This document shows, piece by piece, positions 36,034 to 41,922 of a DNA stretch of 62,035 nt. This DNA is from Saccostrea cucullata (lineage: Eukaryota): assembly GCF_032062105.1 (NCBI RefSeq), contig NW_026927872.1, positions 248,001-310,035 of the forward strand, written 5' to 3'. The position numbers and the translations under genes were made by a program. The stretch's first letter is position 1; every line of letters begins with the position of its first letter. Below the pieces are notes generated by a model, which had not been told where the DNA came from, did not search any database, and saw only the letters and a list, made by a program, of their open reading frames with translations.

Positions 36034-36432
36034 CAACCGAATCCTTCTACCATTCTGTTAGTCCGGTCTGTGACCATAATTTACGTCTATAGTACAGGTA
36101 TTTAAAATTTTTGTCAACATCGTCTGAAGAAAGTTTTTGTAAGCTTTTTTTTTTTTTTTTTTTTTTTTTATTAATACCAATTGTCACAGTATACATGTTT
36201 ATAATATCTTATTAACATCAAAACATCATTAATACATATAGTAAATAAATACAAAAAAAATATAATAATGACAATTGAGATTGAGAGGAGGAAAGAAGAA
36301 GAAGAAGAAAAGAGAGAGAGAGAGGTGAGAAAAGGTGAAAGAAGAACAGAAAAGCATGTTCATAGAAATAAAATAGTGGTCTATGTATGTCCAAGCATTG
36401 CAAGAAATCTTTAGGTGTCTGGTTTCAGGGTC

Positions 36433-39400
36433 TTACATGAGTAGAAGCCAGTCTTTCCATTTATCATTAAATTCATTAATTTGATTACTTTTTGTTGCAC
36501 TATATTTCATCGTAGATAGCAATGTTTTAATATCTCCACGTAACGCTTGTAATCTTAAAACCTCATTCCGACATTTAGTTCTGTATATAAATGATTTAAT
36601 ACATAAAAATATTGTATTTAATTCAGTATTGTTGGGTTTTGGATTCCCAAATATGAAATTACAACTATCTTTTGGAAAGTCTATATTATGAGCTTCACAA
36701 AGAATGGTAAAACTATGTAAAAGCTCCTGAACCTTCTGGCATTCCCACATAATATGAAAAATTGTTTCCTCACATGTCTCACAGAAGCTACATAGTTTAG
36801 TATCCTTCAAACCTATTTTATATAACATTTTATTTGTAACTAAGATATGTTGATTTATTCTGAATTGTAGCCATTGCAATTTAGAACTTTTTGTACATTG
36901 AAAAGGAATTTTGTATATCATTTCCCATAGGGAATCTTCAATTTCAAAATGTTTACTCCATTTTACTTTTGAAACAGGCAGTATATGTTCTGTATTCAGA
37001 ATATTATACATAGCTTTTGTTCCTTTTTTACATAGACAGAATAATTTTAAATAAAAAGGTAGGATGGGCCTTGGGTTTACTCTTTCTTTGTTTATTTTTT
37101 CTACAGCCATAGCTTTTTTTACTGCTTTCTGTAAACTTGCATATGTTAAAAAGTTGGTTTCTATATGAAATTTTGCTTGTAGATCCTTTAATTCTAGAAA
37201 AGTTCCCTTTTCATCTAACAAGTCTGAGATAAAAACTACACCATTAATAAACCATTTGGAGTAAAAAATGGGCTTATTGTCAATTTTAAGTTTTTTATTG
37301 TACCATAATGGTTGAGAGATAAAATCTTCCCATGATTCTATTTTCATTTTGTCTTCTATATTTTTGAAAGCAATTAAAGTATCTTTCCAAAAATCATTAG
37401 TTATACTTTGTAGTATTATTTCAATATAATTTGAACCAGTATTAAATAACTTTTTAATATTAAAAGCTTTTTGAACAAGTGATCTCCATTTAGACTCCTG
37501 TCCATTGAGTAGTTTTTTAATCCAAGATGATTTTAAGCTCTTAATGTAGTTATTTAAGTCAATCATATTCAATCCTCCACTCTTGTAATCTTGAGTAATT
37601 TGTTTTCTTTTTATCTTGTCCACTTTTGATCCCCAAAGAAAATTAAATAGAACACTATTTAGATTCTTAACAAAATTTTCAGAAGGTGAAGGTAAAGCAA
37701 TAAAAAGATGGTTTAGCTGTGCTATTAATAATGATTTTATAAGTGAAATCCTACCCAAGGGGGTAGTACGTCTTTTACTCCACTGTAGTATTATATTCTT
37801 AATTTTGACCAATTTTTTGTCATAGTTGAGTTTTGGAACTCTACTTAAGTCAACATCAAAATAAATACCCAATACTTTAAATTGTGTTGACCATTGAAAA
37901 TCCATTTCATTAAGAGGTTTTTCAGATGAATATTTTTTGCTTCCTATCCAGACTATTTGTGTTTTAGAGAGATTTATTTTAAGTCCTGATAATTTATAGA
38001 ATTGATTTATTTCTTCAATGCAATTTCTTAGGGATTTTTCTGTTCCATCTAGTATAACTAATGTGTCATCTGCATATTGAGACATTAGGTATTCCTCCCC
38101 ATCAATTTTAATCCCTTTTATATTTTTATTATTTTTTATTTTTAAAGCTAAAATTTCTGCACAGAGTAAAAATATATATGGTGAAATTGGATCACCCTGA
38201 CGACAACCACGGCCTAGTTTAAAGAAATTAGATAGGTGGCCGGCTTGATTAATTGCTGATACAATATTACATTGAAATAATGAAACCCATCTTCTTAAAG
38301 AAGGACCAAAATTAAAGAATTTCAGGGCTTTATCAATAAAATTCCATGACACAGTGTCAAAAGCTTTTTCAAAGTCAATCATTAACAACATTCCAGGAAT
38401 ATTTTTTTCTTCTGTATAATGCATTAGATCATAGATTAACCTGGTATTTTCTCCTATGTATCTTCCAGGTACAAAACCTGTCTGGTCTGAACTTATAATT
38501 GTATTCAAGATATTTTTCATTCTACTTGCTATACAGCCAGATCCTATTTTATATACAACGTTTAATAATGATATTGGGCGCCAATTTTTTATGAAAAATT
38601 TACTTTTTCCTTCTTTAGGTATACAAGTGATAATTCCCTGTTTTTGTGTAACAGAAAGCTCTCCTTTTTGGTAACCATAATTTATTGATCTTACTATGAA
38701 ATTTCCCAGCTGTTTCCAGAAAACTTTGAAGAATTCTGTTGTAAAGCCATCGCTTCCAGGACTTTTATCATTTGACATATTTTTCAAAACTAGTAATGCT
38801 TCATTTAAAGTTATCTCCCCTTCAAGACTATTCTTTTGTGTATCACTAAGTTTTTCTGCAGCAATGTCCCAAGTATCATCATTTAGATCAACATTTGTCA
38901 TATCAGAATTAGCCTCATAAAGTACTTTATAATATTTTTCGATTTCAAGAAGAATATCTTTCTGATTTGTTATTTCTGAATCAATTGATTCATCTTTAAT
39001 CAATTTAGGGATTATTTTATTTGTATAGTGTCTGTTCTCTAGGTTTAGAAAGTAATTAGTAGGTTTTTCTCCTTCATTCATCCATTTTACTCTAGACCTT
39101 ATGATATTTCCCATAAGTTTATGGTCTCTTATATTTTCCAATTCCTTTTTCTTATTATAAATTGTTTGAATATTTTTATCGTAGTCTTTTTCCAAATTTT
39201 CGATTTCAGAAATTAACTGATTTTCTTTCTCATTGCTTTTTTTCTTTACATAACTAGAATAAGAAATGGTCTTGCCTCTAATTTCCATTAGGAGTGTTTC
39301 AAGGAAAAGCTGTTCATCCGTAGTAAACTGAATTTCTGAATCTGATATTTCTTTGATATATTCTTTAGAATAGATAGGTAATGCATAATTTTCCTTTGTT

Positions 39401-40209
39401 TCCTGAATAACTTTGTTGACCGTTTCAATATATTTAATATCTTTAAGAAGTGAGTTATTAAATTTCCACAAACCTTTTCCATGAGTAAACTCATTCAATT
39501 TAATCTTTAGGCATATTGGTGAGTGATCAGATTTATAACTATTCAAAATTCTACTTTCTTGAACACTATTTAAAAAAGAATTTGATATGAGAAAGAAATC
39601 TAATCTTGCTTGTTTACAAGGGGAAGGTTTACGCCAAGTATATCTTGTTTCATCAGGATGCATTTCTCTAAAAATATCACTGAAATCATACTCAGAGATG
39701 ATTTCTAGAACTTTGCTTCTTGCCTTTGGGTTATTAATATGAAGATAATTAAAATAATCTTTTTCTGGGTCTAAAACTAGATTAAAATCTCCAACCAAAA
39801 TAACATCTTGATTTGATAAGTCCTTTACAATATTTGACAATCTTTCATAAAATGAGGGTGTGTCCTCATTTGGTCCATATATTGAAATTAAACTCAGACG
39901 CTTGTTTTCAATTGTTAAATCTAAAGCCAAAAGATTTCCCGCGTCATCAGCTATTCTATTATGAACCTTATGTTCAAAATTATTATTAAAAAAAATAGCA
40001 ACATCTCTTGACTTTGACGAAAATGAATTAAAATAAGCCTCGTATCCCCATTCATTTCTAATATCATTCTCCATATCACTTGTAAAATGGGTGTCTTGTA
40101 GACACAGAATATTGCATTGAAATTGCTTATAATATTGGAATACGTCCTTTCTCTTTTTAAAATCATGAAGACCCTGACAATTTGCTGAAACTACTGTAAA
40201 CCCAGACAT
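36433..40209 (-). CDS. LINE ORF2p: APE endonuclease, reverse transcriptase and C-terminal CCHC zinc knuckle, 1258 aa
   Basis: EN motifs NCQGL, LQDTH, IYGPN, GDFN, RLDFFL, SDH. RT motifs KSPGSDG, WRPISLLN, DFEKAFD, GCRQGDPISP, YADD. Zinc knuckle CSFC...ETIFHIMWEC. Confidence 0.97.
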   Translation of the reverse strand: MSGFTVVSANCQGLHDFKKRKDVFQYYKQFQCNILCLQDTHFTSDMENDIRNEWGYEAYFNSFSSKSRDVAIFFNNNFEHKVHNRIADDAGNLLALDLTIENKRLSLISIYGPNEDTPSFYERLSNIVKDLSNQDVILVGDFNLVLDPEKDYFNYLHINNPKARSKVLEIISEYDFSDIFREMHPDETRYTWRKPSPCKQARLDFFLISNSFLNSVQESRILNSYKSDHSPICLKIKLNEFTHGKGLWKFNNSLLKDIKYIETVNKVIQETKENYALPIYSKEYIKEISDSEIQFTTDEQLFLETLLMEIRGKTISYSSYVKKKSNEKENQLISEIENLEKDYDKNIQTIYNKKKELENIRDHKLMGNIIRSRVKWMNEGEKPTNYFLNLENRHYTNKIIPKLIKDESIDSEITNQKDILLEIEKYYKVLYEANSDMTNVDLNDDTWDIAAEKLSDTQKNSLEGEITLNEALLVLKNMSNDKSPGSDGFTTEFFKVFWKQLGNFIVRSINYGYQKGELSVTQKQGIITCIPKEGKSKFFIKNWRPISLLNVVYKIGSGCIASRMKNILNTIISSDQTGFVPGRYIGENTRLIYDLMHYTEEKNIPGMLLMIDFEKAFDTVSWNFIDKALKFFNFGPSLRRWVSLFQCNIVSAINQAGHLSNFFKLGRGCRQGDPISPYIFLLCAEILALKIKNNKNIKGIKIDGEEYLMSQYADDTLVILDGTEKSLRNCIEEINQFYKLSGLKINLSKTQIVWIGSKKYSSEKPLNEMDFQWSTQFKVLGIYFDVDLSRVPKLNYDKKLVKIKNIILQWSKRRTTPLGRISLIKSLLIAQLNHLFIALPSPSENFVKNLNSVLFNFLWGSKVDKIKRKQITQDYKSGGLNMIDLNNYIKSLKSSWIKKLLNGQESKWRSLVQKAFNIKKLFNTGSNYIEIILQSITNDFWKDTLIAFKNIEDKMKIESWEDFISQPLWYNKKLKIDNKPIFYSKWFINGVVFISDLLDEKGTFLELKDLQAKFHIETNFLTYASLQKAVKKAMAVEKINKERVNPRPILPFYLKLFCLCKKGTKAMYNILNTEHILPVSKVKWSKHFEIEDSLWEMIYKIPFQCTKSSKLQWLQFRINQHILVTNKMLYKIGLKDTKLCSFCETCEETIFHIMWECQKVQELLHSFTILCEAHNIDFPKDSCNFIFGNPKPNNTELNTIFLCIKSFIYRTKCRNEVLRLQALRGDIKTLLSTMKYSATKSNQINEFNDKWKDWLLLM

Positions 40210-40713
40210 GAAATATGAAATTGAACTGGTGCAAAAAACTTGGACAAATATTTACTCACCATCAGAAAAAGTGTTGCTCTAAACATGCGAAAGATAGAAG
40301 AGAAGATAAAAGAGGAGATTAAAGAATGGTTTAGCAATAAAGACACATGCATCATAGAGTGATAGGTGTGCACGTCTTGTTAGAGATTTAGTCGATAGGG
40401 CAAAGACATTTTACAAATCATATCGGATATGCCGCTTCGAGAAAAAAATAGTAAACCAAAAAGGGTAAACATTTAAATCCGGAAAAGTATGAATATATTT
40501 TCCAAGTTGAAAACTACTTTTAAATCCGGCTTTACCCATTTATATATTAAACAAAAATAATATTCTTAATAAAAACTTTCGTTGTATTGAATTTGAAGGG
40601 AAAACGGCATTAATATTCGTACTTAGGCCTATATATGAAAAATGAACATATTTACAAGATCAAAAAGGTCACCTGATATTATAGTTACCGTCAGTCTTAA
40701 ACTGTTTGAAAAG

Positions 40714-41922
40714 TCACATTTCTAAAGAATTGGCGACTTCATTAATCACTTGTTCCATAATTGAAAATCTCTGGGGTCCAATATGGGCATCCCCCATCCA
40801 CCTTGTGATAACGAAAGCTGCATTGTTTATATTGTTTTCTTTCATGTAGCGCAGCATCTTACGCCCAGCCCCGTGTTCTGAATCGTCATGATAATTTTCG
40901 TGAACGGTACCGTTCTCTGTAGATAATCTGTACACCAAAATTCGGTTATCAGCACTTGCTGCATAGGGATCTATTAGGACTTTGCTGTACATCTTCTTCA
41001 CATCATCCACATTTTTAACTCGAGCACCGAAAGCCATAAATTCCGAACCGTCCTTTTTGATTGGGTCCGAGTTTTTTATTTCAACCGAGTCTAGGTGTTC
41101 TGTCTCTTCAGGTGTTACCAATAAAGCATCTGCATTTGTGAGAAATGGTACGTCATCTTTATATGTGGAGCCGTTGGGCAAGATGACCTGATTCTTTTGA
41201 ATCTTAACAGTGATGTTTTGGCTGCGCAAACTATCTGCCGTATCAAACACCTTGTTTCGAGCGGAAACAATAGATGCAGGTTGCTGCGTTGTAATAAAGA
41301 AAGGCAATGGTTGTTTAGCAATTTTCTTTAGCTTTTGGGCATTAAGAATTGTGTTGATTTTACTACGGTCAGTCAGCTTTGCGGTAATGGATACAGGTCG
41401 ATCGGAATTATATTCTGGACGCACCCCATTCCTATGAATCCTTACAAAGCTGACATCCACCCCCAGAAGTTCTTTAAAAGTAGCTGGCATGGACGTGGTT
41501 AGGTTTTCGTTGGGTTCGAAAGGATAATTATGAATGAGGATATTATCCCGCATTGACCTTGATCTAAGATCCGTAACATCATTTTCGATGACGGACATTT
41601 TCCTGTCCATTCGGATTACAACCGATCGTAGTAATTCCAGTTCTCTCCGCAATTGAGCGTTTTCTTGACGCAGCAAAGATATATCTTCATAATTGCTCTC
41701 ACTTTGTTCAGAAACATATTTTAATTTTGCATTTACACTCTGATCACCCTCCGACAAATCATTTCTAATAGTTTCCACTGATGATTTAATGTCCTGAATA
41801 GTGGTAACAATTGACTCATTATCGGCTGGGTCTTCTAACGGTTCACTACCTGCATTCTTCTGTGAGCACTCCTCAACCTGTTTTTTAGAAGTAGCCCCGG
41901 TTTTTCTTCTGTCTGACGGCAT
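40714..41922 (-). CDS. LINE ORF1p (402 aa from the first ATG): coiled coil, L1-type RRM/CTD region and C-terminal IMPACT/YigZ (UPF0029) domain
   Basis: Heptad region LLRQENAQLRRELELLRS. L1 ORF1-like motifs RSMRDNILIH, FVRIHR and RPVSITAKL. The C-terminus SEFMAF...ASADNRILVYR...DDSEHGAG...VITRWMG..HIGPQRF matches the IMPACT signature. The ORF track start at 42051 is a TTG codon. Confidence 0.9.
   Translation of the reverse strand: MPSDRRKTGATSKKQVEECSQKNAGSEPLEDPADNESIVTTIQDIKSSVETIRNDLSEGDQSVNAKLKYVSEQSESNYEDISLLRQENAQLRRELELLRSVVIRMDRKMSVIENDVTDLRSRSMRDNILIHNYPFEPNENLTTSMPATFKELLGVDVSFVRIHRNGVRPEYNSDRPVSITAKLTDRSKINTILNAQKLKKIAKQPLPFFITTQQPASIVSARNKVFDTADSLRSQNITVKIQKNQVILPNGSTYKDDVPFLTNADALLVTPEETEHLDSVEIKNSDPIKKDGSEFMAFGARVKNVDDVKKMYSKVLIDPYAASADNRILVYRLSTENGTVHENYHDDSEHGAGRKMLRYMKENNINNAAFVITRWMGDAHIGPQRFSIMEQVINEVANSLEM

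Follow-up and report, generated by a model that had tools for sequence, protein, structure and literature searches.

The ORF1 protein of mammalian L1 elements is a type II ORF1p, in which a coiled coil is followed by an RRM and a CTD (PDB 2YKO/2YKP/2YKQ, 2W7A and 2LDY), and it is encoded in a bicistronic element together with an APE-RT ORF2. Other LINE ORF1 proteins appear to carry additional, host-derived modules, such as CCHC knuckles, PHD or esterase domains (classifications by Khazina & Weichenrieder and others). The UPF0029 or "ancient" domain, in contrast, is known from cellular proteins. It is conserved from bacteria to mammals, occurring in bacterial YigZ/TT1547 (PDB 1VI7 and 2CVE), where YigZ has a C-terminal DUF1949 domain, and in the eukaryotic GCN2 regulators IMPACT and Yih1 (PDB 6BQI). 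IMPACT and Yih1 inhibit GCN2 through an N-terminal RWD domain that competes for GCN1, whereas the function of the ancient domain is still unknown, and no ligand or activity is known for any UPF0029 protein (PMC7140605; PMC4503747).

The LINE we investigated joins these two protein families. It lies on the minus strand of a window of 62,035 nucleotides from the hooded oyster, Saccostrea cucullata (assembly GCF_032062105.1, contig NW_026927872.1, positions 248,001 to 310,035; coordinates below are those of the window). The initial annotation proposed that an intact LINE carries an IMPACT/YigZ domain (40714-41075) at the C-terminus of its ORF1p, and our analysis confirms this. The open reading frame extends from 42051 to 40714; counted from its first ATG, ORF1 has 402 residues, and 40714-41075 encodes residues 283-402 plus the stop codon. 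The features of the element are listed in Table 1.

Table 1. Features of the LINE, with coordinates in the window and residue ranges in the encoded proteins.
Feature	Coordinates	Strand	Residues	Remarks
5' target-site duplication	42093..42108	-		AAGCTTACAAAAACTT, read on the element's strand; exact 16-bp repeat of 36131-36146
Full-length L1-type LINE	36147..42092	-		About 5.95 kb, both ORFs open
5' UTR	41923..42092	-		170 nt
ORF1	40714..41922	-	1-402	402 aa plus stop
ORF1 coiled coil	41554..41820	-	35-123	Long predicted helices at 35-57 and 63-123
ORF1 RRM (predicted fold)	41284..41553	-	124-213
ORF1 CTD-like domain (predicted fold)	41137..41283	-	214-262
Linker between CTD and IMPACT domain	41071..41136	-	263-284	Two short predicted helices
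IMPACT/UPF0029 ancient domain	40723..41070	-	285-400
Spacer between the two ORFs	40210..40713	-		504 nt
ORF2	36433..40209	-	1-1258	APE endonuclease at aa 8-233, reverse transcriptase at aa 530-783, zf-RVT at aa 1091-1162
3' UTR	36170..36432	-		AATAAA at 36167-36172
Poly(A) tail	36147..36169	-		Run of about 23 A
3' target-site duplication	36131..36146	-		AAGCTTACAAAAACTT, read on the element's strand

The C-terminal residues of ORF1 match the Pfam family PF01205 (UPF0029) with an E-value of 4e-17 and 62.6 bits against a cut-off of 27, covering profile positions 2-105 of 107. A phmmer search of ORF1 against PDB returned the IMPACT homologue/Yih1 entry 6bqi with an E-value of 3.7e-13, but did not report bacterial YigZ at E <= 1. 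The AlphaFold2 model of ORF1 (pLDDT 90.3) aligned over residues 280-402 (model residues 269-402 for the three Z-scores) with TT1547 2cve (Z 16.6, rmsd 2.1 A over 113 residues), YigZ 1vi7 (Z 15.9, rmsd 1.9 A over 116 residues) and Yih1 6bqi (Z 11.6). The best structural match is thus to the bacterial proteins, although sequence similarity to these is weaker than to eukaryotic IMPACT. ORF1 ends about two residues after the UPF0029 fold, and the DUF1949 domain of YigZ is absent. Pfam lists no RWD domain at E <= 1, and the charged linker of IMPACT and Yih1 is missing as well, so the known mechanism of competition for GCN1 is not available to this protein.

Upstream of the ancient domain, and in frame with it, the order and predicted fold of the coiled coil, RRM and CTD are those of human L1 ORF1p. 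The central domain 2w7a aligned with model residues 123-213 (Z 10.7, rmsd 2.7 A over 88 residues), the trimer chain 2ykq with residues 82-256 (Z 10.2), 2ykq and 2ldy aligned through residues 256-257, and Foldseek recovered 2yko with an E-value of 3.9e-7. This assignment rests on the fold only, as the sequence is too diverged for Pfam Transposase_22 to register. ORF2 matches Pfam Exo_endo_phos, RVT_1 and zf-RVT, and is much closer to human L1 ORF2p (9k6g, E-value 8.2e-92 over residues 3-896) than to R2 (6.7e-18), although without a reference RT phylogeny we do not name the subclade (L1 versus Tx1). The element, with its poly(A) tail and target-site duplication, is a young, intact, low-copy L1-clade LINE whose ORF1p carries one extra C-terminal module.

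The initial annotation attributed the capture of this module to a LINE lineage; however, this is not one lineage of one element but a large, old and still active group with many families in this genome and across bivalves. In the S. cucullata genome we found at least 150 protein matches and at least 149 matches that pass the Pfam cut-off, at 30-100% identity, and three diverged families have both an intact ORF1 with the domain and an intact ORF2 of about 1260 aa. Named homologues occur in Saccostrea echinata, Magallana, Crassostrea virginica, Ostrea, Pinctada and Tegillarca. In clustered protein data, 863 representatives at 50% identity match at E <= 1e-10, and most of the best hits align colinearly over ORF1. 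Distant ORF1s at 23-29% identity, in three unnamed assemblies and two metagenome contigs, also sit upstream of APE/RT-type ORF2s. The near clusters are reported only from Mollusca, whereas the taxonomic range beyond bivalves could not be established, as the accessions concerned (GCA_003704795.1, GCA_029979725.1, GCA_046766195.1 and PRJEB15404) are not linked to an organism in any searchable paper.

The divergence of the domain tracks the divergence of the rest of ORF1 (Mantel test, 0 of 500 permutations reach the observed value). Between distant families the domain is the best-conserved part of ORF1, with 33-38% identity against 15-22%, and it is better conserved than the upstream 250 aa in 93% of 8778 pairs; the linker preceding it is the least conserved segment apart from the N-terminal 34 residues. 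The dN/dS ratio of the domain is 0.09-0.10, compared to 0.06-0.07 for the RRM and 0.11-0.14 for the coiled coil. The fusion is therefore old, and the domain has evolved together with the rest of ORF1 in hundreds of lineages under purifying selection, which suggests that the element needs it.

As the initial annotation noted, the conserved His and the Gly of the DDGE motif are altered in this copy. The His is replaced by Asn and the Gly by Ser, and GD is found in place of GG, while the other motif positions are kept. However, the His and DDGE changes are limited to a Saccostrea subclade. Of 222 LINE-type domains, 78% keep the His and 70% the Gly, and the other invariant IMPACT positions are kept in 87-99% (DD 95-96%, E 87%, GxG 98% and 91%, R 95%, G..R 98-99%). 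The changed or non-catalytic role proposed in the initial annotation thus cannot be extended to the whole group, although the domain of this subclade may work differently from the others.

The domain derives from eukaryotic IMPACT. The LINE-type, bat and fungal domains align colinearly without gaps at 28-48% identity, and LINE-type domains are up to 47% identical to bat IMPACT. A word-index search starting from this copy recovered only LINE ORF1s, but a second search from a more canonical LINE domain recovered bat and fungal IMPACT. In the domain phylogeny the bat and fungal IMPACT domains split from all 163 LINE-type domains with a support of 0.98. The host IMPACT gene is a separate, intron-split locus on another contig; as judged from search matches to its exons, without a joined exon model, it is 57-68% identical to bat IMPACT, whereas the LINE copies reach only 31-41%. 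Searching the RWD family led to unrelated RWD loci.

ORF1 is identical to the NCBI protein named "protein IMPACT homolog [Saccostrea cucullata]". This name is misleading and should not be read as orthology. The NCBI and UniProt names are the only support for a host gene that lies next to a LINE ORF2 by chance, and neither this possibility nor that of a one-off chimera or neutral passenger is compatible with our results: ORF1 lies inside a unit bounded by a target-site duplication and poly(A), is intronless and multi-copy with the same architecture, has the predicted fold of L1 ORF1p upstream of the domain, shows a dN/dS of 0.09 on the domain, and coexists with the real host IMPACT gene. Genes named "protein IMPACT homolog" or "IMPACT-like protein" appear as host candidates in oyster population-genomic and transcriptomic studies (PMC5989259; PMC12564202), and some of them may be transposon ORF1s. 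In full-text searches, which did not cover subscription journals or Repbase and therefore cannot exclude an earlier description, we found no paper that links UPF0029, Yih1 or the ancient domain to a retrotransposon ORF1. The domain thus appears to be an undescribed addition to the accessory domains of LINE ORF1 proteins.

Whereas we are confident in the identity of the fusion, its function is inferred. Our favored, but tentative, explanation is that the domain keeps the conserved surface of cellular IMPACT/YigZ and works as a docking module for the ribosome or translation machinery. If ORF1p trimerises as human L1 ORF1p does, then the trimer would carry three copies; docking would hold newly made ORF1p on the translating LINE mRNA (cis-preference) and might help translation of ORF2 across the spacer. 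The same invariant positions are kept as in IMPACT/YigZ, and published work maps ribosome, actin and Cdc28 binding to Yih1 regions that overlap the linker and ancient domain, and notes that the invariant residues cluster on one face (PMC4503747). However, the mapped ribosome-binding region also includes the Yih1 linker, which is absent here, and no experiment links the ancient domain by itself to ribosome binding. A mobile element that has kept only this domain under strong selection, next to an RNA-binding module, points to a role at the RNA or ribosome. A further-reaching and less likely possibility is that the ancient domain is a ribosome-docking module across all life that LINEs co-opted long ago, giving a physical basis for cis-preference and ORF2 translation, and that ORF1 genes carrying it have moved between different LINE clades. 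If so, an ORF1p without the RWD domain or Yih1 linker would be a natural minimal system for finding out what the ancient domain does.

Alternative roles appear less probable. The domain might be a binding or catalytic module for a small ligand or nucleic acid, acting on the LINE RNA or on a nucleotide cofactor and extending the chaperone activity of ORF1p, rather than docking onto a protein or the ribosome. An invariant constellation of charged and glycine residues (DD.E, GxG, R, G..RF and His) kept from bacteria to LINEs fits a ligand pocket, and in one subclade the His and the DDGE Gly are lost together while the rest stays constrained, as if one sub-activity had been dropped; the absence of a known ligand or activity in the family speaks against this. 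Interference with the GCN1-GCN2/eIF2-alpha pathway, which would keep translation going while the element is expressed, is suggested by the derivation of the domain from IMPACT, but is unlikely as GCN2 inhibition works through the RWD domain that ORF1p lacks. Also unlikely is binding to actin or a cyclin-dependent kinase that couples the RNP to the cytoskeleton or the cell cycle for nuclear entry. Yih1 binds actin and Cdc28, and fragment 133-258 (the ancient domain) bound Cdc28 at least as strongly as full-length Yih1; however, the main determinants were mapped to the linker between the RWD and ancient domains, which has no counterpart here (PMC4503747).

In oligo-dT RNA-seq only 10-50 reads per run lie on the element. 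Nearly all of these lie in its 3' 1 kb and carry variants that point to sister copies, and essentially none cover ORF1 (one bin at depth 0.09 in one run), so that expression of ORF1p is not shown. Between subfamilies, blastn shows about 89-90% identity on both sides of the ORF1 stop.

The minus strand of the window holds a complete non-LTR retrotransposon, flanked by an exact 16-bp target-site duplication, AAGCTTACAAAAACTT, and ending in AATAAA followed by a run of about 23 A. The second open reading frame has APE endonuclease, reverse transcriptase and zf-RVT domains, and it matches human L1 ORF2p with an E-value of 8.2e-92 over residues 3-896, compared with 6.7e-18 for R2. Judged by these matches rather than by a reference RT phylogeny, the element is therefore an L1-clade element. 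The coordinates of its parts, and of the other loci discussed below, are collected in the following table.

Coordinates of the retrotransposon and of additional loci mentioned in the text
Feature	Sequence	Position	Strand	Size
Retrotransposon	window	36147-42092	minus	
Target-site duplication	window	42093-42108 and 36131-36146		16 bp
5' UTR	window		minus	170 nt
ORF1 (ATG at 41922, stop at 40714)	window	40714-41922	minus	402 aa
Segment encoding ORF1 residues 283-402	window	40714-41075	minus	
Spacer between ORF1 and ORF2	window		minus	504 nt
ORF2	window	40209-36433	minus	1258 aa
3' UTR	window		minus	
Open reading frame	window	46996-47415	minus	139 aa
Two exons of the probable host IMPACT gene	G000:C1292 (another contig of the genome)	495438-495647 and 494527-494667	minus	
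ORF1 with IMPACT domain upstream of an ORF2 that is not L1-like	L059 (locus in GCA_046766195.1)	577-5946		
ORF1 with IMPACT domain upstream of an ORF2 that is not L1-like	L058 (locus in GCA_029979725.1)	7001-11560		
LINE-type ORF1 P0124 and two DNA_pol_B_2 genes	L052 (ENA contig)	7001-8410 and 11368-15385		

The initial annotation had placed an IMPACT/YigZ (UPF0029) domain at the C-terminus of an L1-type ORF1 protein, and this observation is confirmed in full. The last 120 residues of ORF1 contain exactly those on which the annotation was based, and they match Pfam PF01205 (UPF0029) at 62.6 bits (cut-off 27, E 4e-17) over profile positions 2-105 of 107. A phmmer search against PDB finds the Yih1/IMPACT homologue 6bqi at E 3.7e-13, whereas no bacterial YigZ is found at E <= 1. 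An AlphaFold2 model built on an alignment of 56 sequences has a mean pLDDT of 90.3 and a pTM of 0.77, and Foldseek places Yih1, the human L1 ORF1p trimer, YigZ and TT1547 at the top of its matches to the predicted structure, with E from 4e-8 to 5e-5. A further structural alignment resolves the domains: model residues 280-402 align best with TT1547 (2cve; Z 16.6, rmsd 2.1 A over 113 residues), YigZ (1vi7; Z 15.9, rmsd 1.9 A over 116 residues) and Yih1 (6bqi; Z 11.6), residues 123-213 with the RRM of human L1 ORF1p (2w7a; Z 10.7), and residues 82-256 with a chain of the human L1 ORF1p trimer (2ykq; Z 10.2). In the predicted structure the protein is therefore composed of a coiled coil, an RRM, a CTD, a short linker, and then the IMPACT ancient domain. 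Pfam finds no RWD domain.

The ORF1 is identical to an NCBI protein of Saccostrea cucullata (P0172) named 'protein IMPACT homolog', and close relatives in Magallana gigas are named 'IMPACT-like protein' in UniProt. The precomputed Pfam list for P0172 gives PF28159.1 as well as PF01205; our own Pfam search showed no such additional hit. These names suggest a host gene; however, that reading does not hold. The ORF is intronless, sits inside the unit bounded by the target-site duplication, and is multi-copy, whereas what is probably the real host IMPACT gene is visible as two intron-separated exons on another contig. These exons are 57% and 68% identical to bat IMPACT, while the LINE copies reach only 31-41%; no RWD exon was detected next to them in a search for the RWD family. 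Oyster studies list 'protein IMPACT homolog(ue)' as a candidate host gene for salinity adaptation or as a differentially expressed transcript (PMC5989259, PMC12564202), and, given this annotation issue, these could be LINE ORF1s.

The fusion is widespread in this genome. The 128-aa C-terminal piece finds at least 150 places in the 1.17-Gb assembly, at 100% down to about 30% identity, and many of these lie in open frames of 400-480 aa; the Pfam model finds 149 places above its cut-off. The family to which the element in the window belongs is small and young, with about six ORF1 copies at 99-100% nucleotide identity and about nine at 88-92%, and the sister copies L003 and L004 differ from the window copy by only 1-3 substitutions over the ORF1 coding sequence. 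We retrieved 13 diverged families. In three of these (L034, L035 and L041) an intact ORF1 with the domain is followed by an intact ORF2 of 1261-1274 aa that is 45-66% identical to the ORF2 in the window. Eight of the others have such an ORF1 followed by a broken or partial ORF2, whereas one (L045) is cut by its contig end and another (L046) has an ORF1 damaged at its C-terminus.

Named homologues occur in S. echinata, Magallana gigas and M. angulata, Crassostrea virginica, Ostrea edulis, Pinctada imbricata and Tegillarca granosa. An exhaustive profile-free search of 1.84 billion cluster representatives gave 2933 hits at E <= 1e-3, 863 at E <= 1e-10 and 53 at E <= 1e-30, and most of the 150 listed best hits are 350-480 aa long and align colinearly over ORF1 residues about 40-400. 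The ESM Atlas reports Mollusca for the near clusters. In three unnamed NCBI assemblies and two metagenome contigs, ORF1s at 23-29% identity are again followed by an APE/RT-type ORF2. In the loci L059 and L058, ORF1s with the same backbone plus the IMPACT domain sit upstream of ORF2s that are not L1-like: for L059, phmmer gives L1 at 5e-20 and R2 at 1.4e-18, over the RT core only, and there is no zf-RVT. These ORF2s align with the ORF2 in the window only over short stretches, at 23-28% identity. This ORF1 type may therefore be shared between LINE clades. P0124, a LINE-type ORF1 with a very canonical IMPACT domain found on the ENA contig L052, has no called ORF2 downstream and lies about 3 kb upstream of two DNA_pol_B_2 genes, which would fit a Maverick/Polinton-like element.

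To assess selection we compared the ORF1 in the window with two subfamily copies (L006 and L009) that are 86% identical in the domain. The Nei-Gojobori dN/dS values, which come from pairwise counts on these two subfamily pairs, are 0.09-0.10 for the IMPACT domain, 0.06-0.07 for the RRM, 0.11-0.14 for the coiled coil and 0.16-0.26 for the CTD; post-insertion decay pushes such values towards 1, so the estimates are conservative. In the same comparison, the 3' half of ORF1 (CTD and IMPACT) is about twice as diverged at synonymous sites (dS 0.46-0.80) as the 5' half (dS 0.25-0.35), which could reflect mosaic ancestry or an RNA-level constraint on the 5' half. Among the most distant families in this genome the IMPACT domain keeps 33-38% identity, while the coiled coil, RRM and CTD fall to 15-22%. 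Over 133 non-redundant full-length ORF1s, the domain is better conserved than the preceding 250 residues in 93% of 8778 pairs (mean 32% against 23%), and its divergence correlates with that of the rest of ORF1 (Spearman 0.34; 0 of 500 Mantel permutations reach this value). The domain has therefore evolved with ORF1 as one unit and is its most constrained part.

The LINE-type domains align without gaps to bat and fungal IMPACT and reach 47% identity to bat IMPACT, whereas the bat and fungal sequences are 50% identical to each other. In an unrooted tree of 165 non-redundant domains, the two cellular IMPACTs split from all 163 LINE-type domains with a support of 0.98. This fits one old capture of a eukaryotic IMPACT ancient domain; however, with only two cellular sequences and no bacterial outgroup, it is not proof.

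The initial annotation also noted that the conserved His and the DDGE motif are altered, and took this to suggest a changed or non-catalytic role. The copy in the window indeed has Asn for His, Ser for the Gly of DDGE, and GD for GG. Nevertheless, among 222 LINE-type domains the canonical positions are kept: His in 78%, D-D in 95% and 96%, the Gly of DDGE in 70%, Glu in 87%, G-x-G in 98% and 91%, Arg in 95%, and G..R-F in 98%, 99% and 82%. The sequences that replace the His (with N or S) are all Saccostrea or unnamed relatives, and within that group the closest relatives of this copy also vary at the Gly position (S, C, Y or D). Two canonical positions were thus released in one subclade while everything else stayed under selection, and a changed role may hold for this subclade but not for the group.

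An L1-type ORF1p carries an extra ancient domain that is constrained and retains the conserved face of IMPACT, but what this domain does is inferred. The function of the ancient domain is described as unknown (PMC7140605). The invariant residues of Yih1 and YigZ cluster in loops on one side of the molecule, and the Yih1 regions sufficient for ribosome, actin, Gcn1 and Cdc28 binding overlap the linker and the ancient domain (PMC4503747). We tentatively favor a docking role on the ribosome or translation machinery that would serve cis-preference and/or ORF2 translation, although we do not consider this explanation more likely than not. A ligand- or nucleic-acid-binding role is a less likely alternative, and binding to actin or a CDK appears doubtful, but neither is excluded. 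Interference with the stress pathway is also improbable, though it too remains open: inhibition of GCN2 needs the RWD domain (PMC7140605), which is absent here, and direct GCN2 antagonism is therefore the less likely reading.

Three oligo-dT RNA-seq runs labelled with the same species gave 10, 17 and 50 reads at 97% identity or more. Nearly all of these reads lie in the 3' 1 kb of the element and carry variants that point to sister copies, and essentially none lie on ORF1. This is weak evidence that the family is transcribed, and no evidence that ORF1p is made.

Full-text searches, which did not cover subscription journals or Repbase, found no paper connecting UPF0029, Yih1 or the ancient domain with retrotransposon ORF1, and databases recognize the domain but not its LINE context. 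What appears to be new here is the accessory domain, carried by an otherwise familiar type of protein, the LINE ORF1p. A 415-aa cluster of the ESM Atlas assigned to Annelida aligns with the ORF1 model over residues 33-369, and all of its members carry Pfam NADAR (PF08719); it may be another ORF1-like protein with a different C-terminal accessory domain.
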